Source: Mytilus trossulus (lineage: Eukaryota). From it: a DNA stretch of 64,000 bases. The notes under the pieces were generated by a model. The model saw nothing but the letters and a program-made list of their open reading frames with translations. It did not search any database and was not told the origin of the DNA. Made by a program: the position numbers and the translations under genes. Location: contig NC_086382.1 in NCBI RefSeq assembly GCF_036588685.1, positions 21,266,001-21,330,000 of the forward strand, read 5' to 3'. Below are positions 5,217 to 48,980 of the stretch, piece by piece (positions within the stretch are counted from its first letter, which is position 1; every line of letters starts with the position of its first letter).

Positions 5217-6939
5217 GTTTAAGTATATGTTTTATAATAAAAAAAAAAAAGAATAACAAATATCGTTACATCCAGATTTACCTATCTATAGCTAGATATA
5301 GGGAATTGTTTGTTTGGACAGATTGTCTGCATGATAATGTAGTATACAGAGTTACTGTCACCTACCAAAACGAACATATATATTATCAAAAAATATTTGC
5401 CATAATCAATTCGTCAAGAACCATCAGATGCCTTTCACACACTTTTATTGTGGTGTTGTCTGCAGTATTAAATAAATTGATTATTGTGTACAGCAAGTTC
5501 TTTTCCCCTTTTACATCTTAATTTATACATACACTTTTATTACGACGGAAAAGCCATGCATCACTGATAGAAACCAGTATCAGAATAACTAAAATACTAC
5601 TGCAGCGCATGATAAGTTCCTGTGGCAAAATTTCTTTATTCTGAAAAATAAAAATAAAACATGACGAGAACAAAAAACATAATAGACGTTTATGTTTTGT
5701 ATCGTTTAATTGATATTTCTACTTTTTCAAAAGTATGATATGATTTTATATTTTTTACTAAATCTAACTTTATTGTTATCAAACTGAAGTCATTCTAAAG
5801 AAGTACATAGAAGAATAAAAATAATTTGAATCTTGAATTACAAGTTCTGGTAAGCAAAACTTAGAAAAATAATGCTAATCTGATTATAGAATTACATGTA
5901 TGCTTTATGTATATAATTATTTACATTAGATACAAATATGCAAATGATATGCATGTGTTATAACATCAAACTTACATTTATAGGTAAATACTCCTTATTC
6001 GATGTGAGCCTATCACTAAAAAAGATAATTTCCTTGTATATATACCTCTCAGAAAATAGGATAATTCAAAATGACTAAACCTATCCTTCTTTATTATTTA
6101 TGCTAATTTTGTATTCGAAATAATGACGTAAATATTGTTTTTAGAGATGAAAATTTATGACAACTGATTTCACAGGACATTGACTGGAACACCCTATACA
6201 TGTAATATATGTGACCACAAAGAATGTTTGCATGGAATAATAATAATATTGACTGTCTTTTTAGACGAGGTAAAATTCCACACGTTTAATTTGCAACGAA
6301 GTTATAAGTAAGCGTAATATATTTTATATTTTCTGTTTAAATCATGTAAACTGACTAAGTATATCAGCTAGGAAAGTTTAACATGTTGAATGGTATATCA
6401 TATGAAATTCATTTCTGCAAATTAGGGTTAGCTAGTTTTTGTTATCCCCTTTAGAAACGTTCAAATCCCTGTTTCTGTGGTGTCGTGGCAACATCGCCTA
6501 TATAGTCCCCGCGCCATATACCATTCGGTTTATTACTACAACAAAAAATATAGCCGAAAATATAGCCTTTGTTAATAGTCAAGTTATGCATTTTGTCGTC
6601 AGCTGTATCTAGGGCTATAACACAGAACATGCTGTATTGTAGCAAAGCTGGTATAGCCTTGCAGATCAACTGTTTTTGCAGTTTGTTAAGGATGATAGTA
6701 CTAACAATACAGTCACACTAATATTGTTTTATAATTGAAGACTAAATATGTGACAACTTTAGGACATATATTCACATCTTTCTGAGACATCGTGTCAACG
6801 ATTCTTGAACTATGCCCAGTGTCCTAGCCCAAACTATTGCTTTAGTAAAAAGTGCTGTTCAAAATTGAAAATAGTACATGTTAATAATTACATTACAAAA
6901 TGGTCATTGTAATTATATATGTATCAACTACTTGTAAGA

Positions 6940-7439: not shown

Positions 7440-8395
7440 ACATCCCTAATTAACTGGGCTTTTAAAAAGTCAGAATGCGAGAACATATGTTCAAACTCTT
7501 TTAGGTAATTTTTTAGTAGCAATAAACAAAAGAACTATGTCAATTGGACATGCTTTGATACTATATATGCGCTTGAATTTTTACTTGATAACATCTTTGT
7601 TCGCTTTGGAGATTCCGTATATCGTCATGTTATTGGAAAACCAATGGGGACTAACTGTGCACCACTTATTGCGGACCTGTTTTTGTATTGTTATGAGTTA
7701 CAATTTATTACTAAAATTAGCAAAGACCCATCGAAACAACATTTGATACAAAAATTTAACAATACTTTCAGATATTTGGATGATATTTTGGCTCTAAATA
7801 ATGACGACTTCAGTATGTATACTAAAGAAATTTATCCTGTTGAACTTACTTTAAATAAAGCTAATACTAACAATGACCACTGCCCTTTCCTCGATCTTGA
7901 TATCTATATCACTAACGGAAAGCTTAATACTAAAATCTATGATAAAAGAGATGATTTTTAAATGGTGACGTTCCCTTGTCACCATGTTATGGTGTTAAAA
8001 TATCTCAACTTGTACGATTCGCTCGTGTTTGTAACAACGTATTAGATTTTAGCGAGAAAAATTTATGTATTACTGAAAAATTATTACACCAGGGTTTTCG
8101 ATATCACCAACTAGTCAAAACATTTACTAAATTTTATCATCGGTATAAGGAAATAATTCGTAAATATAACTCAACATGCAGACATCTTATACGTTCAGGT
8201 ATTTCACATCCAATAGTTTATGGTAATATTCTTTACAAAGCACAAAAATGTCAGCATTCACCTCAAAAGCTTACAAAACCTTTAAACAGACTTATAAAGA
8301 AGGGATATAGTTACGATACTGGTGTCAGGTCATTAAAGATTTCATATTTTGGCGTTAATATTGATTCACTTATAGGGTCTTTGCATCGGAACTAA
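7440..8395 (+). pseudogene. Penelope-like reverse transcriptase, disrupted
   Basis: Motifs G(K)PMGTNCAPLIADLFLY, FRYLDD, PFLDL, IYDKRDDF, YGV.ISQLVRFAR; a deletion/frameshift near 7960 splits ORFs 7644-7961 and 7976-8395. Confidence 0.85.
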
Positions 8396-8707
8396 ACACA
8401 TTTATTTAAAAAACAGTTGTTGGCATGACACGGGTTATGTTCTTCTCATATATTTTATGATAGTATGATACTAAACCCCTAACGGGAGGGATTGTGCCTG
8501 ATATTCATATAATGAAGACATAATCTTTCAATCAGTTTAATTGAGGTCTGGAGCTGGCATGTCAGTAAACTGCTAGTAGTCTGCTGTTATTTATGCATTA
8601 TTGTCATTTTATTTATTTTCTTTTGTTTCATCTTCTGACATCGGACTCGGACTTCTCTTGAACTGAATTTTAATGTGCGTATTGTTATGCGTTTACTTTT
8701 CTACATT

Positions 8708-8798
8708 GGCTAGAGGTATAGGGGGAGGGTTGAGATCTTATGAGCATGTTTAACCCCGCCGAAATTTTGCGCCTGTCCCAAGTCAGGAGCCTCTGGCC
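8708..8798 (+). ncRNA. Putative type-P5 (circularly permuted) twister ribozyme
   Basis: P5 GGCTAGAGGT(8708-17)/GCCTCTGGCC(8789-98); P2 GGGG(8721-24)/CCCC(8754-57); GAGGG 8725-29; U^AA 8751-53; GCC 8758-60; P4 CCTG/CAGG enclosing TCCCAAGT. Confidence 0.8.
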
Positions 8799-9779
8799 TT
8801 TGTTAGTCTTGTATGATTGTTAATTTTAGTTTCTTGTGTATAGTTCGGAGTTTAGTATGACGTCCATTATCACTGTACTAGTATACATATTTTTTAAGAG
8901 GCCAGCTGAAGGACGCCTACGGGTACGGGAGTTTCTCGCTACATTGAAGACCCATTGGTGGCCTTCGTTTATGTTGTCTGCTCTATGGTCGGGTTGTCGC
9001 TTTGACACATTCCCCATTTCCTTTCTCAATTTTATTGTGTTATATAAATCTTCAATTCATAGTAAACGAATCAAATCCCAGGTAATTTGTTTATATAAGT
9101 ATATTGAAAAGAAAGAACCTTCCTCTTCAAAACAATGTGCATTACAACAAAGGATCAAAATGTCCATATACATTCATACATTCTACAAACAGGTAAATAG
9201 AAAAGGACCACCACATTTGTTAAATTATGTGGTAGCCAAGCAAAACATCATCGTATGTATGATGGAGTGATTGATGGATATTACATGTTATTATTATATG
9301 ATTAATGATATATCTTGATTTGTTTTGTTACTTTTTTTGCAACAGCTCACCTTGTTTCAACCTCAAACAGTATTTTAATGAACGTTCATATTACATAATA
9401 TGATATAATTGCGCATGTTTACATGTCAGTATGCAGGTTTATCCCTGAATGACTTTTGGATTTCCCGAAATTGATTTGGAAAAATGTTAGTTAAGAGGCA
9501 GATGTTTTTTATCCGAAACTCCTGCTATACCACTAACTGAAATACAATTGAATAATCACAGATGCTATCGTATCAGTTAGTTTCTTTTAGCTTTTATAAT
9601 TCTAAAGACTTTTGGGATTTTCTTTTGCTAAAAAATTGACTTATTAACTTTTAATTAGAACCAGGGTACTCACCCAGGATTATTTCTTTCTAAAGAACAT
9701 TTAGGTTTTGGTTGTTGTTTTCATTTCATTTCATCTCTCGTTCAAAAGGCTGAATTCAAAATTGATTTCCAGTGTTTCC

Positions 9780-25115: not shown

Positions 25116-28100
25116 CGCAGCTGACTAAAGTTCTCGTCAATTTATTTCCCTGAGAAACAATTTCCCCAGGAAACAATGTATTTTTTTTTTAAATCCATAC
25201 GCACAAAATAGTTCAACGTACTTCTATTTTCGCAGACACTGTATACTGGTTACATTACGTAACACAAATCACAGATAATTTATCAATAATGTTTAAATTC
25301 TAAGAAAAGGGGTCATATTCATTTTTAGCTCACCTGTCCCGAAGGGACAAGTGAGCTTATGCCATCACTTGGCGTCCGTCGTCGTCCGTCGTCCGTCGTC
25401 TGTCGTCGTCGTCTGTCGTCGTCTGTCGTCGTCTGTCGTCGTAAACTATTTCAAGAATCTTCTCCTCTGAAACTACTAGGCCAAATACTTTCAAACTTTA
25501 ACTGAATGTTCCTTAGGGTATCTAATTTATAAATTGTATCCGAAGTTGTGATCTATCAACAAACATGGTCGCCATTGCTAAAAATAGAACATAGGGGTCA
25601 AATGCAGTTTTTGGCTTAAAACTCAAAAGCCAAAGCATTTAGAGCAAATCTGACAGGGGATAATATTGTTTATCAGGTCAAGATCTATCTGCCCTGAAAT
25701 TTTCAGATGAATCAGACAACCTGTTGTTGGGTTACTGCCCCTGAATTGGTAATTTTAAAGAAATTTTGCTGTTTTTGGTTATTATCTTGAATATTATTAT
25801 AGATAGAGATAAACTGCTGTAAACAGCAATAATGTTCAGCAAAGTAAGATTTACAAATAAGTCAACATGACGGAAATGGTCAGTTGACCCCTTTAGGAGT
25901 TATTGCCCTTTATAGTCAATTTTTAACCATTTTTCGTAAATCTTAGTAATCTTTTACAAAAATCTTCTCCTCTGAAACTACTGGGCCAAATACTTCCAAA
26001 CTTTAACTGAATGTTCCGTAGGGTATCTAGTTTGTAAATTGTATCCGAAGTTATGATCTATCAACAAACATGGTCGCCATTGGTAAAAATAGAACATAGG
26101 GGTCAAATGCAGTTTTTGGCTTATAACTCAAAAACCAAAGCATTTAGAGCAAATCTGACGTTGGGTAATATTGTTTATCAGGTCAAGATCTATCTGCCCT
26201 GAAATTTTCAGATGAATCAAACAACCTGTTGTTGGGTTGCTGCCCCTGAATTGATAATTTTAAGGAAATTTTGCTGTTTTTGTTTATTATCTTGAATATA
26301 ATTATAGATAGAAATAAACTGTAAACAGCAATAATGTTCAGCAAAGTAAGATCTTCAATTAAGTCAATTTGACCAAAATTGTCAATTGACCCCTTAAGGA
26401 GTTATTGCCCTTTAAAGACTTTTTTCACAATTTGTTCATCATGTTGACTTACTTTAAAAAATCTTCTCCTTTGAAACGGCTGTATCAATTTCAGCCAAAC
26501 TTAGGCTAAATGAGTTTCAGAGTATCTAGTATAAATTTTATATTTTATTTCCTTGTAGAAAATAGGAGAAAATGATTATTTTTTTTGGCTTTTGAAGAAA
26601 ATAAATTCCAAAAAACCATTTAAATAAATTGAAAAGCCAGAATAATCATTGATGAGAGATTTAACCAAAAGAATTAAGGTGAGCGATTCAGGCTCTTGAG
26701 AGCCTCTTGTTCATAGAATGATTAATTATTTTCTTAATGATTCTAGTATATAGTAGGGGAAACATTGTTTATGTCAAACAAGTTTGCATTCACTAGTGAT
26801 CACTAGTTTGTCATTCTGTCCGTCAGGACAATTTTCTAAAAGTTTTATCCTCATGTTTGAATTTATTTATTAGATATGAACTATGAACATTTCATAATAT
26901 TATTTAAGGGGTTGGGGGGGGGGGGGTCAAATTTTTTGTGTGTTTCCAGTGGAAACATTTTTTTGGTTTTCCAGGGGAAACATTTTGTTATGTTTCCAGG
27001 TTTTTCTAAAAAAAAATTAACTACTTGTCAATGTTTTCCCCCTCCTAGTATGGGGTTATCATAGACAATTTTCATGTTTCCAAGGAATACGTTTCTTTAG
27101 TACTTCTACAGTTGTCTGGTAATTATTTTTTACCTACTTGTTAATTTATAATTATGTCGCCTAGTATGGGGTCTCTTAGGAAAGATATCATTTTTATGTT
27201 CTCAAGGAACAAATTTAATTTTCGTGTTTCCAGGAGGAACATTTTTTTTTTGTGTTTCCAGGGGAAACGTTTTTGTTGGTGTTTCCAGGGGAAACTTTAT
27301 TTTGTCTTTTATAGGGGAAACATTTTTTTTTGTGTTTCCAGGGGAAACTTTTTTTGTTAGAGTTCCAGGGGACACTTTATTTTGTGTTTCCAGGGGAAAC
27401 ATAGTTTTTTGTGTTTCCAGGGGAAACTTTTATTTTTGTGTTTCCACGGGAAACATTTTTTTTAAAATATTTCCAGGGGAAACATGTTTGTTTGTGTTTC
27501 CAGGGGAAACATGTTTTTTTTTGCGTTTCCAGGGGACACTTTATTTTGTGTTTCCAGCGGAAACATAGTTTTTTGTGTTTCCAGGGGAAACTTTTATTTT
27601 TGTGTTTCCACGGGAAACATTTTTTTTTAATTTTTCCAGGGGAAACATGTTTGTTTGTGTTTCCAGGGGAAACATGTTTTTTTGTGTTTCCAGGGGAAAC
27701 TTTTATTTTTGTGTTTCCACGGAAAACATTTTTTTAATGTTTCCAGGGGAAACATGTTTTTTTGTGTTTCCAGGGGAAACTTTTATTTTTGTGTTTCCAC
27801 GGGAAACATTATTTCAATGTTTCCATTTTTGTCTAGTAATTTTTTTTAACTACATAGGAAAGATTTCATGTTTCCAAGGGACACATTCAATTCTTATTAT
27901 TTTTTGTGCTTCCAGGAGAAGCATTTTTTTGCTTTTCAAGGGAAACATTATATTTTGATGTTTCCAGGTGAATCTTTTTTTTGTGTTTCCAAGGGAAACA
28001 TTTTTTTTATAAGTTTCCAGCGTTGTTTAGTAATTATTGTTTAACTACATGTCAATTTATAATTCTGTCGCCAAGTATTGGTTTCTCTTACAGGGGAAGC

Positions 28101-29921
28101 ATATTTTCAAAGTTTCAAGGGAAATCTTTTAAACTAACGGCACTAAACCAAAACTGATTTGTGTTTTATCCATTGATTGGTACGCTTTTTGGATAGCTCT
28201 TCGGTTGTCTACAATTATTTGTTTTAATGCTTTCTTGAGTATTTTAGCAATTTCATAGATTTTTTCATAATAATAAAAGCATTATTTTGCCTCCATTTTT
28301 TAAATAAACATGTCGTTAAACAACATTTACTAAACATCGCTTGAAATAAATAAAATGTTTCCCTTTGAGACACAAAATAAAGTTTTCCCTGGAAACAACA
28401 AATTAAAATGTATCCCTTGTAAAAGCAAAAAGAAAAGGTTTTCCTGGAAATACCCAAAAAAAATCGAATTGAATGTGTCCCTTGGAAACATGAAATGAAA
28501 TCTTTCATAAGTAGTTAAAAAAATATTACTAGACAAAAATGTAAACATCAACAAAATGTTTCCCCTGGAAAAACACAAAAACAGTTTGCCCTGGAAACAC
28601 CATAAAAGAATGTTACCCCTGGAAACACCAAAAACAAATGTTCCTCCTGGAAACACGAAAACACGTATATAATTTAATGTCCAATGGAAACATGAAAATG
28701 AAATCTTTCCTAAGTAGTCAAAAAATTCTTACAAGACAGACATGGAAACATTAAAAAATTGTTTCCCCTGGAATACCAAAAAAAAATGTTTCTCCTGGAA
28801 TACAAACAAAAATGTTTCCCCTGGAAACACAAAAAAAAATGTTTCCCCTGGAAACACAAAAAAAAATGTTTCCCCTGGAACACAAACAAAAATGTTTCCC
28901 CTGGAAACACAAAAAAAAATGTTTCCCCTGGAAAAAAAAAAATATTTTCCCCTGGAACACAAACAAAAATGTTTCCCCTGGAAACACCAAAAAAAAAATG
29001 TTTTCCTTGGAAACAAAAAAAAAAGTTTCCACTGGAAAAAAAAAAAAAGTTTCCCCGGGAAAAACAAAAAAAATGGTTTGCCCTGGAAACACACTAAAAA
29101 ATGTTTCCCCTGGAAACAAAGAAAAAATGTTCCTCCTCGAAACACGGAAAATGATTAGAATTAAATCTGTTCTTAAAAACATGAAAATGAAATCTTTCAG
29201 AAGCAGAGAAACCAATACTAGGCAGCATCATTATAAATTAACAAGTAATTAAAAAATAATTACTAGACAAGTCTGGAAACACAAAAAAAAATGTGTTCCC
29301 CCTGCCATACACATAAAAAAGAATGAAATCAAATGTGTTCCTTTGAAACATTAAAAATTTCTAAGATAAACCCATACTAGGAGGGGGAAAACATTGACAA
29401 GTAGTTATTTTTTTTTAGACAAACCTGGAAACATAACAAAATGTTTCCTCTGGAAACACAAAAAAAAATTTTTCCACTGGAAACACCAAAAAAAATGACA
29501 CCCCTCCTAGTAATATTATGAGTGTTCATAGTTTATACCAAATATCTAATGAATATATTCAAACATGAGGATAAAATGTTTGAAAAATTGTCCTGACGGA
29601 CAGAATGACAAACTAGTAATCACTAGTGAATGCAAACTTGTTTGACATAAACAATATTTCCCCTACTATATACTAGAATCATTAAGAAAATAATTAATCA
29701 ATCTATGAAAAATGAATATGACCCCTTTTCTTAAAATTTAAACATTATTATAAATTATCTGTGATTTGTGTTACAAAATGTAATCAGTATACCGTGTCTG
29801 CGAAGATAGAAGTACGGTGCACTATTTTGTGCGTATGGTTTTAATCTTTTTTAAATTACATTGTTTCACTGGGAAATTGTTTCTCAGGGAAATAAATTGA
29901 CGAGAACTTTAGTCAGCTGCG
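25116..29921. mobile_element. Foldback-type element: long modular inverted arms with internal ~28-bp tandem hairpin repeats
   Basis: CGCAGCTGACTAAAGTTCTCGTCAATTTATTTCCCTGAGAAAC at both ends, inverted; TGTTTCCAGGGGAAACA arrays at 26930-28125 and inverted at 28355-29490; flanks AAAAAACC/AAAAAACA. Confidence 0.9.
25325..26709 (+). mobile_element. Complete Helentron-associated non-autonomous element (HINE/DINE-1-like) inserted in the left foldback arm
   Basis: 5' AGCTCAC..GTGAGCT inverted repeat, (GTC)n/(GTCT) microsatellite 25374-25442, ~505-bp tandem units at 25456/25961/26460, 3' AGGTGAGC subterminal repeat and AGGCTCTTGAGAGCCT stem-loop; inserted in a T-run and absent from the right arm. Confidence 0.88.
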
Positions 29922-31631: not shown

Positions 31632-33296
31632 ATGCTGGATAATCGAGCAATTCAAATGTCTGAACAATTGTGTAACTCATGTCAAATAAACAATGAGACA
31701 AAAACGGCAATTTCTTGGTGTACTATTTGTGAAGAGGCATTTTGTGAACAGTGTGATAAATGTCACAAATCTTTCAAATTTACAGCAAAGCACAAAGTTA
31801 TTTTAATGCAGGAAATTCAGTCAGGAAATTCCAATTTGAAAATATCGGAAGTGCTGAAATGTGAAGAGTATTCTTCAAAGATTGTTGAGGTTTACTGCGT
31901 GGATCATTCACAACCATGCTGCAACCTATGTGCACAACTTTCACATCGCAAATTTGAAAACGTGACCTCCATCGAAAATCCTGCCAAAGGTATAAAGCAA
32001 TTTAATCTTACAACTACTTTGATTAAAAAACTTGACGAAAGGAATAAGGAACTTGATGAAATTATTGCGAAACGGAAAGATAGTATGACTATATTTGAAG
32101 GCACCTCTGAAAACATTATTCAAGAAGTGTCAACACTAAAAATGGTAGTTATAGATCATTTAAACAAACTAGAAGAGAAAATAAAGTTCGATCTGGCCTC
32201 TTCAAAGAAACATGTGGTTATGAAATTTACCGATGAAATTAACACTTTTTCGAGTTATAAAAGTGTATCGGCTAACTGGCAGTCAGTTCTCAATGTTTCC
32301 ATAGAACAAGGATCAGATCAACAGTGTTTAATGGAAGTCAACAGGATCGATTCAAAAATGACTATACTTGAGAAGGAAATTGAAGAAACTATAAAAAAGA
32401 TGAAGGAAATGACTATTAAGTTTGTCCCGTCTGACCTGATTGAGAAATTTAAAAGCATCGTAGAGTCGTTGGGTTCCGTAGATATAATAGAAAACAAGTT
32501 TCCATGCACACTATATATTGGGGGATATAGAGAAAGGTTAAATTTTCGAAGCGGTGACATTAAAATTTTGCATAGAATTAATGCTGCAGAAAGTGGTTTA
32601 ATGAGTGCAATATTCATTGCTGATAACCTAATTATAACAAGCTATTACAAAAGTAATGTTGCAAAATACAGCCTCAATGGTGAATTACTGCAAACTTTAG
32701 CTGTAGAAAAGTATCCACTAGATATAACACAAGTTGATAGAACTCAAGTCGCTATTTCTACGTATAAAAGTAACAAAATTTTGTTTGTGGATATTTCAGA
32801 AATGAAGTTAATACGAAAATTGGATTTTTCAGATTTACCCGTCTATGGATTATGCTATGCCGACGGAAACTCATTCGTTATATCCGATGGATCCACACTG
32901 ACATGGGTAAGTTCAAAAGGGGAGATAATTAAACAAAAACCAACACGTGGTAATTCGTTTTATGTTTCAACATCGGATATGAAAGATTGTATATATGGAG
33001 ATGGGGATAATTCTGTGTCATGTGTAGTAGGGGACAGAACCAATTTTACGTATACAAATGAACAATTGTCCTCCCCACGGGGAATCGGAATAGACTTTGA
33101 GGGAAATATCTTTATTGCTGGATGGAGTTCTAAGAACATTCATCAAATAACGGATGACGGAAATTTAATACGGACAATTCCGATTGACACTTTTGGAATT
33201 AGAAGACCATGGACGATACGTTTTGCTCCTAATAGTAATAAATTTGTCGTGACATGTAGTTCTTCTGGAATAGTGGTACTGTGTGAAATAAGTTGA
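31632..33296 (+). CDS. RING-less TRIM ORF (B-box, degenerate B-box2, coiled coil, NHL-like propeller), 554 aa; may be a pseudogene
   Basis: Collinear and highly similar to 39633-41579; LSSPRGIGIDFEGNIFIAG NHL-like repeat; B-box2 ligand losses (CEEY, HRKF). Confidence 0.6.
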   Translation: MLDNRAIQMSEQLCNSCQINNETKTAISWCTICEEAFCEQCDKCHKSFKFTAKHKVILMQEIQSGNSNLKISEVLKCEEYSSKIVEVYCVDHSQPCCNLCAQLSHRKFENVTSIENPAKGIKQFNLTTTLIKKLDERNKELDEIIAKRKDSMTIFEGTSENIIQEVSTLKMVVIDHLNKLEEKIKFDLASSKKHVVMKFTDEINTFSSYKSVSANWQSVLNVSIEQGSDQQCLMEVNRIDSKMTILEKEIEETIKKMKEMTIKFVPSDLIEKFKSIVESLGSVDIIENKFPCTLYIGGYRERLNFRSGDIKILHRINAAESGLMSAIFIADNLIITSYYKSNVAKYSLNGELLQTLAVEKYPLDITQVDRTQVAISTYKSNKILFVDISEMKLIRKLDFSDLPVYGLCYADGNSFVISDGSTLTWVSSKGEIIKQKPTRGNSFYVSTSDMKDCIYGDGDNSVSCVVGDRTNFTYTNEQLSSPRGIGIDFEGNIFIAGWSSKNIHQITDDGNLIRTIPIDTFGIRRPWTIRFAPNSNKFVVTCSSSGIVVLCEIS

Positions 33297-33597
33297 CGCA
33301 AGATTGATAATGATCAAATAGGAAAATAGTAATATGTACCCTAATCAACCTATTATAGTTACTTTTTAGACAATATTTGCCTTATATTCAATGTTTTTTT
33401 TATTAACTGAAGTCCTGTCTATTTTATTTCCTTAATGCTATACTCAAAGCGTCATAAGTAAACGACCATACAAATAGATTTAGAAATTAAGATGTGTTGT
33501 TTTCCCACTTTAGTTTCAATTTGGAATTGCAATTTTGGGATTTCAAAGATAAAAAAACAGTAAGAACTGCTTTCCCCAAATCATATTTAGGATTATG

Positions 33598-33850
33598 TCT
33601 GTTTTGTTCACGCATCGTTGTAAAAATAACGGAATTTGATGCGACTGTCATAAAAGTGAGAGGTTTCGCGCTATAAAATCAGGTTCAATACACCATTTTC
33701 TACATTTGAAAATGCCTGTACCAAGTCAGGAATATGACAGTTGTTGTCTATTCGTTTGATGTGTTTTATCCTTTGATTTTGCCATTTGATGAGGGACTTT
33801 CCGTTTGGAATTTTCCTCGGAGTTCAGTATTTTTGTGATTTTACTTTTCA
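33598..33850 (+). mobile_element. ~250-bp non-coding interspersed repeat carrying a twister fold
   Basis: 3' half repeated at 34520-34657 (+); degenerate copy at 44115-44365 (-). Confidence 0.75.
33642..33743 (+). ncRNA. Putative type-P5 twister ribozyme (second family)
   Basis: P5 CGACTGTCATA/TATGACAGTTG; GAGGT 33660-64; C^AA 33686-88; ACC 33692-94; P3 ATTTTC/GAAAAT; P4 CCTG/CAGG enclosing TACCAAGT; P2 imperfect. Confidence 0.72.
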
Positions 33851-35021
33851 CTTGCTGGGTAAAAAATCGAAAAATGATTGAAACCTTTCTGACATTAAAT
33901 GGGCTTAATCTTTCGAAAAACTAAATAGTTCTACTCCAGGAATAGATGATCTAAGCTGTAAAGTATCTTGAATCCTCTAATAGTTCGTACTTTATTTCGC
34001 CCTTTTCACTTGATGAAAGACATTCCAAACTAGGATGAATTGATTAGTTTTAAAAAGTCAAAAGAACTTTTGCGTCTAGTTTTTTCAACATAAACTTTGT
34101 TATGATCTATAGAAAATTCATTGCAGGAATATAGAATTTGGTAACATATTATATATATATATACGTAATTTTGTTGGAATATCATAGCGCACGTACATGT
34201 GTATCTTGCGATGCTGTGACATTTTGAAAAGATTGCAGATGATTTTTTTAAAAGCATTAGGCGAAATAAAAAGAGTAGGTTGGCCGGGCCTCTTTGTTAA
34301 AGTCTAAGGTTATATAAGATTTATTTAAGTTTTGTTTCTTGTCCTTTCAATGTGTTATTTAAGTGTTTAATTAGGTACAATTCAATTTTGATAGTTTTCT
34401 ATACTTCCTAAAGTTGTAACATTGTTCTGGCTCATAGCGACTTTCTCATTTATCAGTTGTGCTTCGTGGCAAACAGGCAATCGTTGGATTACCCGACTTT
34501 TAAATCGCATGAATATGTTCTACATAGGAAAATGCCTGTACCAAGTCAGGAATATGACAGTTGTTATTCATTCGTTCGATTCGTTTTAGCTTTTGGTTTT
34601 ACATTTGACTGTCCGTTTTGAACTTCCTCGGAGTTCATCATTTTTGTGATTTTACTACACTATTTCTATGAACGTAACACTTAAATTCACAATGCACAGA
34701 ACCTTCATGAGTGACCAAACATAAGTTTCTGTTATAGATAATTATAATGCACATTTTAAGTATTTTTTTTGTCGTAGAACACACCGAGGGGTGTCAGGAT
34801 TGATCAAATGAAAGACCGACCGTATGGATATACTGACACCACGATATCATTTTCCTTACACTTGTGATTCACCATTAACTAGACCTAAGTACACATGAAA
34901 ACATTGTTGACGACAATACCGCCAACGCCGGAAACAATATAGCGATTTCTCGCTTTGTTTAAATCAAATATCAATGATAAGAAAAACAGGTAACCAGGAA
35001 GGATCAAGTCCAATTTTAAAA

Positions 35022-39632: not shown

Positions 39633-41579
39633 ATGTTTAAAATGGCGACATTTACGAATGATTTGGAACATTTTGATGATTTATTAACGTGTACAATTTG
39701 TCTGGAAACTTTTATAGTTCCGAAATATTTGCCATGTCTCCACACTTTCTGTGAATCGTGTATTAAAACTTACATTGTATCATCTACAGAAAAAGACAAT
39801 CAGTCCGAGGGATTCAAGTGTCCGGTTTGTCGAAAGTTTGTATCATACGTCAACAGACCAGATAAACCAGAAGCATGGGCTTCCTCATTACCGATGAACC
39901 ATTTTGTGAGGTCGATGTTGGATAAGCGATCAATTCAAAGGTCTGAAAAATTGTGCAACTCGTGCCAATTTAATGATAAGACCAAAAAGGCAATATCTTG
40001 GTGTACATCTTGTGAAGAGGCTTTTTGTGAACAGTGCGATGAATGTCACAAATCTTTCAAAATTTCAGCTAAACATAAACTTATTTCAATCAAAGAAATT
40101 CAGTCAGGAGGTTTCGATTTGAAAACATCTGAAGTCCTGAGTTGTGAAGAACATCATGAGAAGATCGTAGAGGTTTATTGTGTGGACCATTCGAAGCCGT
40201 GTTGTACCCTTTGTGCAACTCTTTCTCATCGCAAATGTGAAAACGTAATCTCAATCGAAAATGCTGCTAAAGGTATAAAGCAAGCCAAACTTACAACTTC
40301 TTTGGTTACAAAACTTGACGAAAGGAATAAGGAATTCCATCAAATAATTGAAAATCGGAAAGATAGCATGACTAAATTCGAAACCATATCTGAGAACATT
40401 ATTCAAGAAGTGTCAACACTGAAAATGGCAGCAATAGTTCATTTACAAAAGTTAGAAGAGCAAATAAAGGTCGAAGTGGCCTCATCAAAGAAGCGTTTTT
40501 TCATGAAATGTACAGATGAACTTAACACTTTTTCGAGCTATAAAAGTACCTCGGCTAACTGGCATTCAGTTCTTAAAGGGTCAATAGAACATGGATCAGA
40601 CCAACAGTGTTTAATGGAAGTCAACAAGATTGGTCCAAAAATGAGTATAGTTGAAAAGGAAATGGCAGAAGAAATGAAAAAGATGAAAAATATTACTTTT
40701 AAGTTTGTCCCATCTGAACTGATTGAGAAATTTAAATCAAACGTAAAGTCGTTCGGTTGTCTAAATATAATTGAAGACCAGTTTTCTAGTATGCTGCCAG
40801 TTATGGGTATCAGACAAAGGGTTAATTTTCATAGTGGCGACATTAAAATATTGCATAGAATTAATGCTGCTGAAAACAGTCAAACTAGTGCTATTTTCAT
40901 TGGTGATCACCTTGTTATAACGAGCTTTATTACATGCAACGTTGGAAAATATAGCCTCGATGGAAAATATATAGATTCTTTAGCTTTGGAAAAGTATCCA
41001 AATGATATAACACAAGTTGATCAGTGTCAAGTCGCTATTGCGATTTATAGTAGAAACAAAATTGTGTTTGTTGACATTACGAAAATGAAATTATTACGAA
41101 CATTGGATTTACAGGATATAACAATATATGGATTATGTTGTGTCGAAGGGAACAATTTAATCATATCGAGTAGATCGAATTTAACATGGGTTGACTCATC
41201 AGGGAAGAAAGTAAAACAAAAATCTACAAGTGGTTGTTCATATTTTGTGTCTAAATCGGAGACGAAACATTATGTATATGGAGAAGGAGATAATTCCATA
41301 TCATGTCTAGAAGGGGACACAGTCAAGTTTATGTATACAAGTGAACAGTTGTCCCATCCGCGGGGAATTGGAATAGACTTTGAGGGCAATATCTATATTG
41401 CTGGACAAAGTTCTAAGAACATTCACCAAATTACTAATGATGGAAAATTAATACGTATAATTCCGGTCAACACGTTTGGAATTATACATCCATGGACAAT
41501 ACGTTTTGCTCCTAACAGTAATAAATTTGTCGTTACATGCAGTTTTTCGGGGAAAGTTATACTGTGTGAAATAAGTTAG
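39633..41579 (+). CDS. Tripartite-motif E3 ubiquitin ligase (RING-Bbox1-Bbox2-coiled coil-NHL-like propeller; TRIM56/TRIM71-like), single coding exon
   Basis: C3HC4 [21 protein letters not shown], two B-boxes, helical middle region, LSHPRGIGIDFEGNIYIAG; 648-aa intact ORF. The ATG at 39642 is the one conserved in copies 1 and 2. Confidence 0.93.
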   Translation: MFKMATFTNDLEHFDDLLTCTICLETFIVPKYLPCLHTFCESCIKTYIVSSTEKDNQSEGFKCPVCRKFVSYVNRPDKPEAWASSLPMNHFVRSMLDKRSIQRSEKLCNSCQFNDKTKKAISWCTSCEEAFCEQCDECHKSFKISAKHKLISIKEIQSGGFDLKTSEVLSCEEHHEKIVEVYCVDHSKPCCTLCATLSHRKCENVISIENAAKGIKQAKLTTSLVTKLDERNKEFHQIIENRKDSMTKFETISENIIQEVSTLKMAAIVHLQKLEEQIKVEVASSKKRFFMKCTDELNTFSSYKSTSANWHSVLKGSIEHGSDQQCLMEVNKIGPKMSIVEKEMAEEMKKMKNITFKFVPSELIEKFKSNVKSFGCLNIIEDQFSSMLPVMGIRQRVNFHSGDIKILHRINAAENSQTSAIFIGDHLVITSFITCNVGKYSLDGKYIDSLALEKYPNDITQVDQCQVAIAIYSRNKIVFVDITKMKLLRTLDLQDITIYGLCCVEGNNLIISSRSNLTWVDSSGKKVKQKSTSGCSYFVSKSETKHYVYGEGDNSISCLEGDTVKFMYTSEQLSHPRGIGIDFEGNIYIAGQSSKNIHQITNDGKLIRIIPVNTFGIIHPWTIRFAPNSNKFVVTCSFSGKVILCEIS

Positions 41580-43739: not shown

Positions 43740-45359
43740 CATTGGTTGAGAAAGCCGGAGGTCAATAAACTTGTGAAAGCGTCCGTAAAATGTTCGATGG
43801 GGTGATATTTTAACTCCCTCAGGCAGAGTTGGTCTCAAAAGGATTTACATGCTTCATCAGTTTAATATTATTTAGCTCTTTAGCTGTTTCGGTTCTTATT
43901 CGTCCTTGGCTTTCAAATATTCGGCATTGAGCATTCCGTATGGAGGTAAAGCCAGGTAATCGTTTCAGACGCATGCAATTTATAACGCGTTATTTCATTT
44001 TTTTTTCAACTACACTACCTTGAACTCATAGTTTATTAGAGTCCATGTAACCAGAAACCCTCTATCAAGGAAATTAAGATAGGAAAATGCAATCTCAACT
44101 GGAACATATATAAAATAGAATTACAAAAAAAAAACGAACTCCAAGGCAAATTCAAACTGGAAAGACTTTTATCAAATGGCAAAATCAAAAACTGAAGCAC
44201 ATCAAACAAAGGGAAACGGATATCATATTTCTGCCTTAGTATAGGCATTTCTTAATGTGAAAATGTTAGATTAAACCTGGTCTTATAGCTAGCTTAAATT
44301 CTCGCATGTATGATAGTCGCGTATAATTCTATTTTATTGAGAACAATGTGTGAGCACAACAACAAAAAAAGTCAAATTTTGTTTTTGTTTGTAAAGTTTG
44401 TTTTAAATAAAGGAAAAAATTGGCAAGAAGAGGAGCACTGTTGGTTCCTATGGGAAATGTCGATTGGTTGTTGAAAAATTCGTTCGTCATTCAAAAGAAA
44501 CAAATATTCAAATTATCATTTTATGTATGTCCACAAATATATTTGACAAGTGTGATTGTAAAACAACGGTATAATTAAGCGTGAATCATCATGCAGTTTT
44601 TATTCAAATGATTTGTTGGTCATGATTTTAGACAGTATTGTCAATGACTAAGCTTAATTTGAAAAAAATCAACAATACTGGCTGTTAAAAACGAATTGTT
44701 ATTTTACTATTTCACCTTCATTCAAGAGGCACTAGCTACGAGATATATAACAAAATCTGAAGTAAGATTTTTTTTTCTGTTCAATCGATAATGAAAGTGA
44801 AATAGTGAAATAATAATTCGCTTTTAGCAGTCAGAATGGTTCAATTTTGTCAAATTAAGCGAAGAAACATTGATAATTACTTATTCACTTGCAAGTGAAT
44901 AACTCGACCTCATTAAATCCGTATTCATGTGAACTTCACTTTAACCCTAGCTACAGATTAACAACGCATACATTGTACTGTACTGGTTATTTAAAGAAAA
45001 AGAATGTCAACAATGAAAAGGAAACTACGGTAAATCATTTGATTACTGGTTCGATCCATATAAAATCATTCTTATATGTTTTAAAACAAAGAGAAGCATA
45101 TATTTTTAATCTTTAAAAATAAAATCAAACAGACCTATAAAAATCCAATGAGGGACATTGGTGAAGATTATCCCCACTTAATTACAGATGGCGCTGTGGT
45201 AGATCAGGTCCAACCACATCTGTTGTATGATAAGAAAGCCAGCATGCATTCATTGATACTATATACAAACATTTTTATACTGATAATTTAGATATTATAA
45301 ATTCCTTTGGTTCATTATTATTTATTATAAACTGTTTAATAGTCAATTTCACTACCAAT

Positions 45360-45918: not shown

Positions 45919-47190
45919 ATGGGAAAAACACTGGACACTAAAGCTAAGCAATTGTATAATAACAGATTTTTGAAATACTTGCGACTGGGGACTGAAAATG
46001 ATTTTTTTTTTGTAAAATCGGAGTGTCATGCTGAGATGAAAAGAAAAATCACATACAAGGTTGATGTTTGTATTAATAAAGAACTAACTATCATGGAGGC
46101 CCAGTGTGAATGTGCTGCAGGTATGGGCCCAACAGCTCATTGTAAACATGTATGTGCAGTCCTCTTTGGAATGACCCAGTTTTCTTGTTTCAAGGAGTTG
46201 AGGACAGAAGAGACTTGTACACAACGGTTACAAACTTTTCATCAATGTAAGCCATTTTCTGGTTCACCTATAAAAGCTCAGAAATTGCCAATTTCGAACG
46301 AGGGTTTGAATGTAAGTTTTGATCCACGGCCGGAAAAGTTTAGAAGTGTTATTGGATATAATGACTATTTTAGGAATATTTGTTTGAACCATTCAAACAT
46401 TGGTTCATTTCCTATATCACACCTTTTTCAACCAGCTAATCTGTATGCTGTTGCAGTAGATCATGATTATTTCAAGCTTTCACCTGAGGATCACTGGCTA
46501 AAAGACAACAAATTATTTCAAATTTCAGATGAAGACATAATTTCAATACAGGCATTAACAGTAGATCAATCCAAGAGCAAACAATGGCTGAATGAGAGAT
46601 GCAAGCGTTTGACATCTTCAAATTTTGGCAGAATATGTAAAGCAACAGACAAGACAGACTTTCACAAACTTGCTTTATCATATACGAGAAGTTCTGCATT
46701 ATATACAGCAGCTATCAAGCATGGTAGACAGTATGAACCAGTAGCAATAGAGAAATATGAATCGATTACGAAGCTAGAAACTGTTAAATGTGGATTATTT
46801 GTGTCAAAAATGCATCCTTTTCTAGCTGCTTCTCCAGATGGATTAACAGAAAACAATACATTGTTAGAAATCAAATGTCCGTATACTGCACGAAATGAAC
46901 TGATCACACCTAAATTTGTTCCTTACTTGTCTGAGGTAAATGGGGAGTTGATTTTAGACCCAAAACATGACTATTACTATCAAATACAGGGACAACTGTT
47001 TTGCACTGGAAAACAAACATGTGACTTTTTTGTTTACACACATGAAGATCACAAATTAATAACAATTGAAAGAAATGACAGATTTATTGTTGAGATGAAA
47101 GGTTCTTTAACTTCATTTTATGAAAAATATTTTAAGCAGGTTGTTCTTGACAAATTTATGTACAACAGTTATGATAAGTATTCCTGGTGA
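45919..47190 (+). CDS. SWIM zinc finger + YqaJ (lambda-exonuclease-like) nuclease; main part of exon 2, which starts at 45775 and is frameshifted near 45890
   Basis: SWIM CECAAGMGPTAHCKH; YqaJ motifs W..R..RLTSSNFG, HGRQYE, ASPDG, EIKCP, YYYQIQGQL. Confidence 0.85.
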   Translation: MGKTLDTKAKQLYNNRFLKYLRLGTENDFFFVKSECHAEMKRKITYKVDVCINKELTIMEAQCECAAGMGPTAHCKHVCAVLFGMTQFSCFKELRTEETCTQRLQTFHQCKPFSGSPIKAQKLPISNEGLNVSFDPRPEKFRSVIGYNDYFRNICLNHSNIGSFPISHLFQPANLYAVAVDHDYFKLSPEDHWLKDNKLFQISDEDIISIQALTVDQSKSKQWLNERCKRLTSSNFGRICKATDKTDFHKLALSYTRSSALYTAAIKHGRQYEPVAIEKYESITKLETVKCGLFVSKMHPFLAASPDGLTENNTLLEIKCPYTARNELITPKFVPYLSEVNGELILDPKHDYYYQIQGQLFCTGKQTCDFFVYTHEDHKLITIERNDRFIVEMKGSLTSFYEKYFKQVVLDKFMYNSYDKYSW

Positions 47191-47348: not shown

Positions 47349-48550
47349 TTACGCATGTCTTGGTATGATACATTGCCTAAAGTTGCAAAGCATGAAAACT
47401 ACAAAAATTATATCACTTGAAAGTTTTGTTTCTGTTCTATTCATTGCAACAGTAAGGATTTTAAATGTCTTTGCTAATCCTATGATTCGTTCAATGTGGA
47501 CACGCTTACTGGATATTTTTCTATCTCTTAAAACTGTTTTCCCAGTCATTCTGTTACGTTTCTTAAAAAATGTTGGAATATTAATAGTTACGTCGCTTGG
47601 TGCAAATAAGTCCTGAATGTTGAAGCCTTTATCTGCCATAATGGAATCCCCAGGATCACATAAGTTAATAAGATTACTCCTTTCCACTATTTGACGGTCA
47701 CTTACTGATCCGCCGTATGAATCAGAAACATAAGACACCAGACCACTGGGTGAGCATCCTACCAAGACTTTAACTGTGTTTCTGTTCTTGTATGTAGAAT
47801 AAGTAGACTGTTGAGCGATTGGAGACTTCGGTTTCTTAACAGGCATTTCTGTCCCATCTACAAGCAGTCTAGTTGATGGAAATTTCAGCTTGAAATCAGA
47901 TGGACTAAAAAAGCGGACTAAATCTCGACTTGGCCACAAATCTAACTCCTTCCATTGTCTAGACATAAAGTTCAGCCATGTGATCCATATATTTGTCACT
48001 GAATGTTCAGAAATGCCAAACAGTCTACTAAGTTCAAAATTGGTTTTGTGTCTTCTTAGCTTGATAAGGGTTAAAAAAAATTGATTTTCAATATTAAGTT
48101 GGTCCACCCTGTTATACAAGTAGTTCATGTGGTATATTCCCTCTCCAAAAGAAGCCAAGACAAATATAAAGTCATTGTAATTTGCCAACCCTGTATAAAA
48201 CAATACACCAGCATCATCATGCCTAAAATTTTCTATAGAAAGGGAAACCCAGGATGGCGTTTGACAGCTAAATTCACTATTCAGTGGAACAGCAGTATAT
48301 AATATGTGCGACTCTGCATCAGGTACTATGGGTGCTGTTGTAGACTCGACACATTCTTCCCGTCCTATATCAGAAGTACATGGATCATTTATTTCAATAT
48401 TTTCTTCTGTGAATGATAGTTCAGATTTTGTTTTGTTTCTTTTAAAAAGTCGATCACTTCTGTCTGGGGTGTTTGAGGATAATTTTCTTTTCCAACAAAA
48501 TACAGATGGAACTGATCCTTTTTTCAACTGTTTTCTGCTAACATCTGTGC
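47349..48550 (-). CDS. ISL2EU transposase exon 2 (THAP tail, HTH, DDE_Tnp_4-type catalytic domain)
   Basis: Acceptor cttgtag before 48550; LKKGSVPSVF; catalytic VDGTE, MADKGF, RVHIERIIG; with exon 1, 1410 nt = 469 aa + stop. Confidence 0.92.
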
Positions 48551-48980
48551 CTACAAGAATAAATACATAATTAATCATTAATATTAAAAAGATGACCTGA
48601 TATTTTTTTTTATCTGTTTATCATACACTGTTTTCATTAATCCAGCTTACTTTGAACAGATTAAACAAACACATTAGAAATCATCACAGCAGGGTATGAC
48701 ATGTGAAAGTACATTATCTGTATAAACATTGATAATTAACAAATTATGCTACATGTAATAATGACACATTAAAAATAAATCTTTCTATCATGAGTTAACA
48801 AAATAAAATAAAGAAAATATTCTATTTACATTTCTATTGCAACAAATGTTCTCGTCTTATTCTTCCCTTTATGAGGTTAAATAAGAATTAAAAAAAAATA
48901 TCATAAGCATATTTTAGACTTTTTTTAAATTATTTTTTTAAGTATTAAATCTTTGGAATTTAATTTCAATATACACTTAC

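Follow-up and report, generated by a model that had tools for sequence, protein, structure and literature searches.

We consider it likely that positions 33642-33743 of the window, the 64,000-nt stretch of Mytilus trossulus DNA analysed here, hold a conserved RNA core from the 3′ tail of a dead, 5′-truncated Naiad-type Penelope-like element (PLE), that this core has a permuted twister fold, and that live elements of this kind cleave themselves at N^AA, probably as dimers. Read from 5′ to 3′, the core would consist of the 5′ strand of P5, the 3′ strand of P2, G-A-G-G-N with the T1 strand, two palindromes in the place of P1, and the N^AA site, followed by the 5′ strand of P2, the pseudoknot dinucleotide, a P3 hairpin, a P4 hairpin with a CCAAG loop, and the 3′ strand of P5. 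Rather than an RNA of a new kind, the motif is a variant of the twister class, permuted and with P1 replaced by palindromes, whose host, the Naiad tail, is new.

The copy in the window that contains this core (33591..33848, +) is the 5′-truncated tail of a C-type Naiad PLE, comprising its last 260 nt. By blastn, it is 87% identical over 260 nt to positions 6676-6935 (reverse strand) of locus L052, which form the end of a copy bearing an 804-aa EN-RT open frame. It starts ∼300 nt past a TRIM-like ORF (ORF end 33296) and is a relic flanking this gene, with no role of its own. The gene is one of two paralogous TRIM-like ORFs in the window (31632-33296 and 39633-41579, both +), which have RING and B-box domains and a C-terminus with weak, mostly sub-threshold matches of beta-propeller type; between the two lie 300-nt repeats that are ∼77% identical. 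The window also contains extended arrays (27164-29545) of a tandem repeat whose 27-bp unit has the core TTTCCAGGGGAAAC, and a YqaJ-like recombinase ORF (45919-47190, +) adjoining a PIF/Harbinger-type DDE transposase ORF (47349-48578, −).

All parts of the core in the window copy lie on the plus strand. The 5′ strand of P5, the outer stem of the permuted twister, spans 33641..33652 and pairs with the 3′ strand at 33733..33744, forming 11-12 pairs. Next come the 3′ strand of P2, GTGA (33656..33659, columns 1-4 of the MAFFT alignment A4), and a stretch that begins with G-A, the putative general base G and its neighbour A, and ends with the T1 strand GGT (33660..33664). The T1 strand itself (33662-33664) can pair with ACC of the loop (33720-33722), and all three pairs form in this copy. 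The segment in the place of P1 (33665..33685) holds the remnant of palindrome 1 and a near-palindrome adjoining the site; palindrome 1 is damaged here, and no palindrome of at least 6 nt was scored in the segment. The predicted cleavage site, C^AA (33686..33688), aligns with the UAA of ordinary twisters. A preliminary description of this DNA had placed an N^AA site between 33686 and 33687, which is confirmed as C33686^A33687.

Downstream of the site are TAC, the 5′ strand of P2, and AC, the pseudoknot dinucleotide (T2/PK1), which together occupy 33689..33693; the AC pairs with G33725 and T33726. The P3 hairpin (33695..33713) has 6 pairs, between 33695-33700 and 33708-33713, and is followed by the P4 stem, CCTG/CAGG, with the 8-nt loop TACCAAGT (33715..33730). 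P5 and P3 still pair in this copy, as the preliminary description had stated. The minimum-energy fold of 33642-33746 (z = −3.45) consists of the 11-pair outer stem, a 7-pair hairpin, which is P3 plus one extra pair, and the 4-pair P4 hairpin. P2 had been called imperfect in this copy, and GTGA does pair weakly with 33689-33691, with 1 to 3 pairs depending on the register. The AA, the G-A, the loop, both pseudoknots and P4 are intact, while P2 and the first palindrome are damaged; the intact elements are those reported to be sensitive in tested twisters (PMC11662667).

Copies of the core are found elsewhere in the window and in large numbers in the genome. The 17-mer GCCTGTNCCAAGTCAGG has three matches in the window compared to 0.01 expected, located at 8771-8787 (N = C) and at 33714-33730 and 34534-34550 (N = A), and 26,605 matches in the 1.30-Gb genome compared to 0 for the reversed control. 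The claim that P4 is invariant between the first two copies holds, with CCTG/CAGG identical within 8771-8787 and 33714-33730. Loop TCCCAAGT goes with the partner strand GAGGG in the 8708-8798 copy, and loop TACCAAGT with GAGGT in the 33642-33743 copy. The former belongs to a 5′-truncated A-type Naiad copy of ∼1.6 kb (7445..9036, +; tblastn, cmscan), which contains the C-terminus of an RT (7524-8203), a SECIS-like element (8449-8511) and the twister core (8708-8798), and is 89% identical over 1627 nt to an A-type copy in L051+L005. The further copies reported at 34520-34657 and 44115-44365 are present, but neither is whole. The first (34515..34656, +), a second C-type copy, is truncated within P3 and has thus lost the fold's 5′ half, including P2′, the T1 strand and the site. 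The second (44099..44376), a third C-type copy that is 75% identical, is on the minus strand and has decayed in P4, the loop and the T1 strand.

Families were defined from 50 loci around GCCTGTNCCAAGTCAGG (30 and 20 more). Majority profiles were made of the non-coding tails alone, for repeat boundaries, with broken frames left unmended. Family A has the loop TCCCAAGT, as does family B, where P5 and P3 are different; families C1 and C2 have the loop TACCAAGT, and 33591-33848 represents a third, older C variant. Each family has a common fixed 3′ end and variable starts (5′ truncation), the pattern left by reverse transcription that begins at the 3′ end. Part of the interior of the Naiad tail has also been amplified as a tandem repeat. 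This is seen in a satellite array of ∼54 copies of 37-39-bp units (L050, G000:C1:1156300-1158700) and in a similar array at G000:C1:4566548-4566989; the units consist of the P4 hairpin and the P5 3′ strand of the C-type core and are too short for the fold.

The host of the core had been described as a ∼250-bp non-coding repeat; it is actually the 3′ end of a ∼4.3-kb coding element, a Naiad-type PLE. Upstream of the A-type core lies an open frame of 217 + 480 aa, split by one TGA, with the motifs CxC, DKA, LPKLHK and YLDD. The open frame upstream of the C1-type core (804 aa) begins with the end of a GIY-YIG domain, continues with CxC, DKA, IPKLHK and YIDD, and stops ∼30 aa past the RT, with no C-terminal endonuclease. 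At least 56 copies in the genome are 91-100% identical to the C1 frame, with frames of up to 1056 aa, and several C1-type copies are paired ∼4277 bp apart, that is, in tandem.

The Naiad classification is based on these motifs, on the GIY-YIG domain that Pfam finds in relatives, and on a protein alignment that puts the GIY-YIG block ahead of the RT. Pfam gave almost no matches on the ORFs themselves, and database neighbours carry GIY-YIG and RVT_1. The diagnostic features of Naiads are an N-terminal GIY-YIG, CxC, DKA in place of DKG, and an RT at the C-terminus; units measure 3.4-4.4 kb and occur in tandem, 3′ ends are present in very large numbers in bivalves, and some members code for selenocysteine (PMC8557442). 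The elements described here agree with that clade in these respects. Mobilisation by a Penelope-like RT had been proposed for the repeat, and the RT is indeed Penelope-like, but the motif lies in the tail of the autonomous Naiad elements themselves.

Within the element, the core is on the sense strand, 0.2-1 kb past the ORF. It starts ∼320 nt (A) or ∼940 nt (C1) past the stop codon, and from its end to the 3′ end of the element there are ∼230 nt (A) or ∼105 nt (C1). The A-type and C1-type RTs are 37-42% identical, yet 16 of the 17 letters of P4 and its loop are the same, which argues that the core is under selection within the elements. No hammerhead was found at E ≤ 10 in six metagenome loci or at the gathering threshold in the window. 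Naiads have been reported to be without canonical hammerheads, and the ribozyme was therefore taken as possibly dispensable; the description of the clade does not mention a twister (PMC8557442).

Two features of the A-type element, a SECIS-like element and an in-frame TGA, fit the selenocysteine-coding Naiads of clams (PMC8557442). The former (8449-8511, +) matches SECIS_1 with 30.0 bits, compared to a gathering score of 35 (E 6.5e-4 on a short stretch). The TGA (L051:8830-8832) is just past DKA in the A-type ORF and stands opposite a Cys of the C1-type ORF. Sub-threshold SECIS matches (26.6-28 bits) are also present in Naiad loci from metagenomes (L097:1913-1977, L076:3318-3385 and L089:2319-2380). 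Among the metagenome contigs, the first 123 nt of L081 repeat the end of the contig (unit 5628 nt), the first 239 nt of L069 repeat a later stretch (unit 4181 nt), and L072 and L084 are colinear, with an ORF, the core and the next ORF. The assemblies of these Naiad relatives are therefore tandem or circular, with an ORF on either side of the core.

The twister ribozyme class was reportedly defined by Roth et al. in 2014. The parts of a twister are UAA, a 4-pair P2, GC, P3, P4, the loop UCCCAAG and GAGGG (PMC8501958), and each is present in the A and B types after permutation at P5. In these types, the P2 3′ strand GGGG is followed by GAGGG, a 21-nt segment, T^AA, P2 CCCC and GC, and then by a short P3, P4 CCTG/CAGG with the loop TCCCAAGT, an A, and P5. 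The core is like the type P5 twister (RF02684) in the order of its parts, opened in P5, in CCAAG, G-A-G-G-N and N^AA, in the two pseudoknots, and in the optional P3 and P5. Unlike the type P5 twister, it is without a P1 hairpin, its third P2 pair is usually mismatched, the covariance model is silent on it, and it is eukaryotic and located inside a retroelement. Type P5 twisters are mostly bacterial.

Twister variants with a weak or absent P1 have been described at the 5′ end of Perere-3/RTE non-LTR retrotransposons (PMC8501958; PMC7761336). These resemble the Naiad core in that a weak or absent P1 occurs within a retroelement, but they are of type P1 and are found at the extreme 5′ end, where cleavage sets the 5′ end of the RNA, whereas the Naiad core is permuted and lies in the 3′ tail. 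Twisters of that kind are also present in the genome, with AAAAAACAATAA-CTCC-GC... and ...GGAG-GAGGG-TT. These ordinary P1-type twisters have ∼70-80 copies in two families, with CCGG/CCGG stems and the P4/loop CCGGTCCCAAGCCCGG (for example, G000:C1:18096318-18096375 and G000:C1:47477816-47477873). In the family with P3, the G of G-A and one P2 letter have changed to A in most copies, and the other family is preceded by an A-rich run, like the RTE 5′-end variants of Schistosoma. A few Naiad-type cores also have a CCGG stem.

The Rfam twister models gave no match at the gathering threshold or at E ≤ 10 in the window (cmscan), and none at E ≤ 10 in six metagenome loci. A search of the whole genome with RF02684 also gave no match, though the controls were equally silent. 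The failure of the Rfam models to score the motif explains how it could be overlooked, but it also counts against membership in the class. Full-text literature on twisters and Penelope-like elements, of which our coverage is incomplete so that prior publication is possible, yielded no report of a Naiad twister, and a 10-mer of the loop retrieved primer noise only.

Comparison across lineages provides the main support for the fold. Metagenome contigs were scanned with an alignment of Naiad proteins, giving 80 loci, and the core is present in only ∼15 of the 33 Naiad-like contigs that have at least 700 nt past the ORF. In these contigs, the P4/loop hairpin lies 160-650 nt downstream of the ORF on the same strand, and the other parts are upstream of the hairpin. 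G-A-G-G-N, N^AA and CCAAG are unchanged throughout the 18 lineages compared, with G-A-G-G in columns 5-8 of A4 and loop NNCCAAGN in all 18. P4 occurs as CCTG/CAGG, GCTG/CAGC, ACCG/CGGT and ACTG/CAGT, and is 100% paired with two covarying pairs (A-U/C-G/G-C; U-A/C-G). P3 and P5 are paired in every one of the 18 lineages, with unrelated sequences. For P2, 73.5% of cells are paired; the first pair covaries (U-A/G-C/C-G/U.G), the second is always formed (G-C; G.U in three rows), and the third is mismatched in most lineages.

The letter after P2 covaries with the last letter of the loop, ∼50 nt away, with G or A opposite T and C opposite G. The two-pair pseudoknot (T2, PK1) is 100% paired in A4; its second pair is an invariant C-G, while for the first pair 8 lineages have C-G, 7 have A-U and 2 have G.U. 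For the window copy there are two registers, of which A4 gives AC, with 2 pairs to GT, and the gapless alignment gives CC, with 1 of 2 pairs. The AC register, already assigned to T2 (with GU) in the preliminary description, is judged likelier because the pseudoknot is then complete in every lineage. In T1 (PK2), two G-C pairs are invariant, and the outer (third) pair is formed in 10 of 17 lineages; at that position C2 has A.G, most of the metagenome lineages have U.U, and two have G.U.

The change of this outer pair from C-G to A-U is real in the window copy and in C1, but the pair is not kept across lineages. The preliminary description had regarded covariation within the window, with the T1 change as its main argument, as the strongest evidence for the fold; with the outer pair unpaired in 7 of 17 lineages, the T1 change is the weakest. 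Maintenance of T1 and T2 across copies, which had been suggested as a check, therefore holds for T2 but not for the outer pair of T1. The claim that the twister fold is real stands on other pairs, namely P4, P3, P5, the first P2 pair and the two-pair pseudoknot, which covary across lineages from the genome and from marine metagenomes.

Pairs were counted in A4, a plain MAFFT alignment of the 18 lineages made with no structure fitting, over the four elements that can be aligned by column. Standard pairs account for 88.7% of cells, compared to 74.9 ± 1.8 in shuffles (reached by 0 of 500), and the covariation score is 0.368, compared to 0.142 in shuffles (0 of 500). When the partners are slid, 33-45% of cells are paired. 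Relatedness alone can beat shuffles, and the weight rests on the slid controls and on the number of pair types. The same pair count on copies from the mussel's own genome alone is much weaker. Together, these alignments support a twister fold for the core, circularly permuted and opened in P5, and they show that this predicted fold and the letters at its putative catalytic positions are kept by selection in the tails of Naiads whose RTs are 37-48% identical.

None of the 18 lineages can form a P1 hairpin in the interval from the T1 strand to the site. In its place, 16-17 of the 18 have two palindromes in a segment of 20-25 nt. Palindrome 1 (6-10 nt) lies one letter past G-A-G-G-N and has at least 9 different sequences, and palindrome 2 (6-11 nt) ends at or beside the letter before the site and has at least 6; both keep their palindromy while the sequence changes across lineages. 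Homodimers are predicted to be favoured over two separate monomers by 7-17 kcal/mol. In the monomer, a competing helix forms between the T1 strand plus UU (GGGUU) and the AA plus the P2 strand (AACCC). The minimum-energy fold, which has this competing helix, is better by 3.5-6.8 kcal/mol than the nested fold compatible with a twister, with pseudoknot energies left out of the comparison.

The absence of P1 does not exclude the core from the twisters, as P1 has been reported to be dispensable. Among 2,600 natural twisters tested, P1 was dispensable and flaws in P1, P2 and P4 were tolerated, and the sensitive elements were the two-pair pseudoknot, the two A's and the G (PMC11662667). The elements found to be sensitive in that study are exactly those that are invariant or covarying in the Naiad cores. 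A precedent for ribozymes in related elements is the hammerhead found in PLE pseudo-LTRs, which is thought to cleave as a dimer (PMC6765202, reviewing Cervera and de la Pena 2014; Lunse et al. 2016), and to do so slowly, with a weak helix III (PMC6765202, PMC7761336). PLE hammerheads occupy the same position in the element as the Naiad core, in the 3′ region from which the pseudo-LTR arises when copies are in tandem. They likewise have one weak closing helix and self-complementary letters that permit a dimer, and the ribozyme class is different.

The palindromes and the parallel with PLE hammerheads suggest, by analogy, a dimer-activated twister. RNA of a live element would cut itself at N^AA, but probably not as a single unit: pairing via the palindromes, between separate RNAs or between units within one tandem transcript, would be needed to supply the P1-like helices, and the competing helix GGGUU/AACCC would keep monomers uncut. 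The role would be that ascribed to the dimer-dependent hammerhead in other PLEs, the processing of tandem or read-through transcripts. We advance a further idea tentatively, as something that may well prove wrong: that Naiads carry a P1-less permuted twister in the place of the hammerhead that is active only as a palindrome dimer, and that the same dimer holds two template RNAs, uniting ribozyme activation with template switching into tandem and inverted copies.

Signs of cleavage were sought in RNA ends and in genomic ends. RNA-seq reads came from four runs of two studies, whose species label is that of the DNA runs containing the window stretch, and were placed on locus L040, which holds near-consensus A and C1 copies. 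Judged against a cut-off of one fifth of the local depth, neither T487^A488 nor C1229^A1228 was enriched for read starts or ends in these standard RNA-seq libraries, which are poorly suited to capturing cleavage ends. Cleavage of one fifth or more of these RNAs is thus unlikely. The two strands are about equally covered, as in passive read-through, and the depth climbs toward the 3′ ends, parallel to copy number. The fixed 3′ end of the A type is visible as hundreds of reads continuing into unrelated sequence. Most reads over the cores probably stem from copies inside host transcripts.

In the genome, three of the ∼92 A copies among the matches listed lose homology within 2 nt of the site, and none does so elsewhere in the 21 nt shown. 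Of the C copies (∼92 among the matches listed), homology ends between −5 and +2 relative to the site in five to seven, and at the base of P3 in six. This clustering at the site is weak and was judged by eye without a control region. At one of the three A-copy breaks, the 3′ end of a copy runs straight into the site (TAACCCC, G000:C1:7915361-7915384, −). Such a junction occurs once in the genome for the A type and is absent from the whole genome for the C type. Tandem copies, or 5′ ends piling up at the site, had been proposed as a check on cleavage; no site-bounded tandems were seen, and the clustering of ends is weak.

These data bear on an alternative that we regard as unlikely but worth weighing, in which the core has the ancestry or fold of a twister and cleavage has been lost. 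The core would then be a structured element of the 3′ tail, recognised by the Naiad RT to start reverse transcription, or a palindrome link of two RNAs that favours the template switches from which the tandem and inverted copies of PLEs arise. The RNA-seq reads, with no cleavage signal, fit such a role, as do the strong conservation of both palindromes and the common tandem units. Full-length copies spanning both sides of the site are the rule, so the template RNA is mostly uncut. However, the invariant letters are those that twister catalysis needs (AA, G-A and the pseudoknot pairs), and not all of these catalytic letters would be required if the core served purely for binding or dimer formation, which counts against the loss of cleavage.

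The preliminary description had instead proposed that the ∼250-bp repeat is a non-autonomous twister retrozyme/SINE mobilised by a Penelope-like RT, and had suggested looking for circular RNA; this reading, in which cleaved circles would spread the repeat, we now consider very improbable. The thousands of short copies, the Penelope-like RT partner, and the one junction of a copy 3′ end directly to the site would agree with it. The short copies, however, are dispersed and 5′-truncated to variable extents, and they grade continuously into long ones that bear the ORF. Their 3′ end is fixed and lies 135-240 nt beyond the core, and the junction of 3′ end to site is unique in the A type and missing in the C type. 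In place of site-bounded tandem units, the arrays seen are the 37-39-bp satellites of part of the core.

Chance resemblance, with the core being a conserved stem-loop domain of a repeat such as the tRNA-like B box GGTTCAATCC of a SINE (33683-33692), which we take to fit the pol III B-box consensus, would agree with the lack of an Rfam model match but is scarcely credible, as the B-box-like letters vary between lineages while the twister positions are constant, the element reaches far upstream into the ORF, and the long-range pseudoknot pair covaries. The tRNA-like B box was rejected on this variation of its letters, and a SINE with a conserved central domain or LINE-derived head (PMC4758252, PMC11481361) was dropped on finding the upstream ORFs.

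The self-cleaving, dimer-dependent reading is directly testable on 100-nt transcripts. If it is true, the core would represent a naturally occurring permuted twister that lacks P1, and tens of thousands of twister-fold copies per bivalve genome would have been missed by current covariance models. Canonical PLEs carry a hammerhead of unclear role, and Naiads dominate bivalve genomes (PMC8557442). The twister fold in Naiads matters because they have been described without the hammerhead that other PLEs carry. If Naiads carry a twister in its place, self-cleaving RNA would be common to at least these PLE clades, and the same task would have fallen to two unrelated classes of ribozyme, each with a weakened closing helix that points to dimers.
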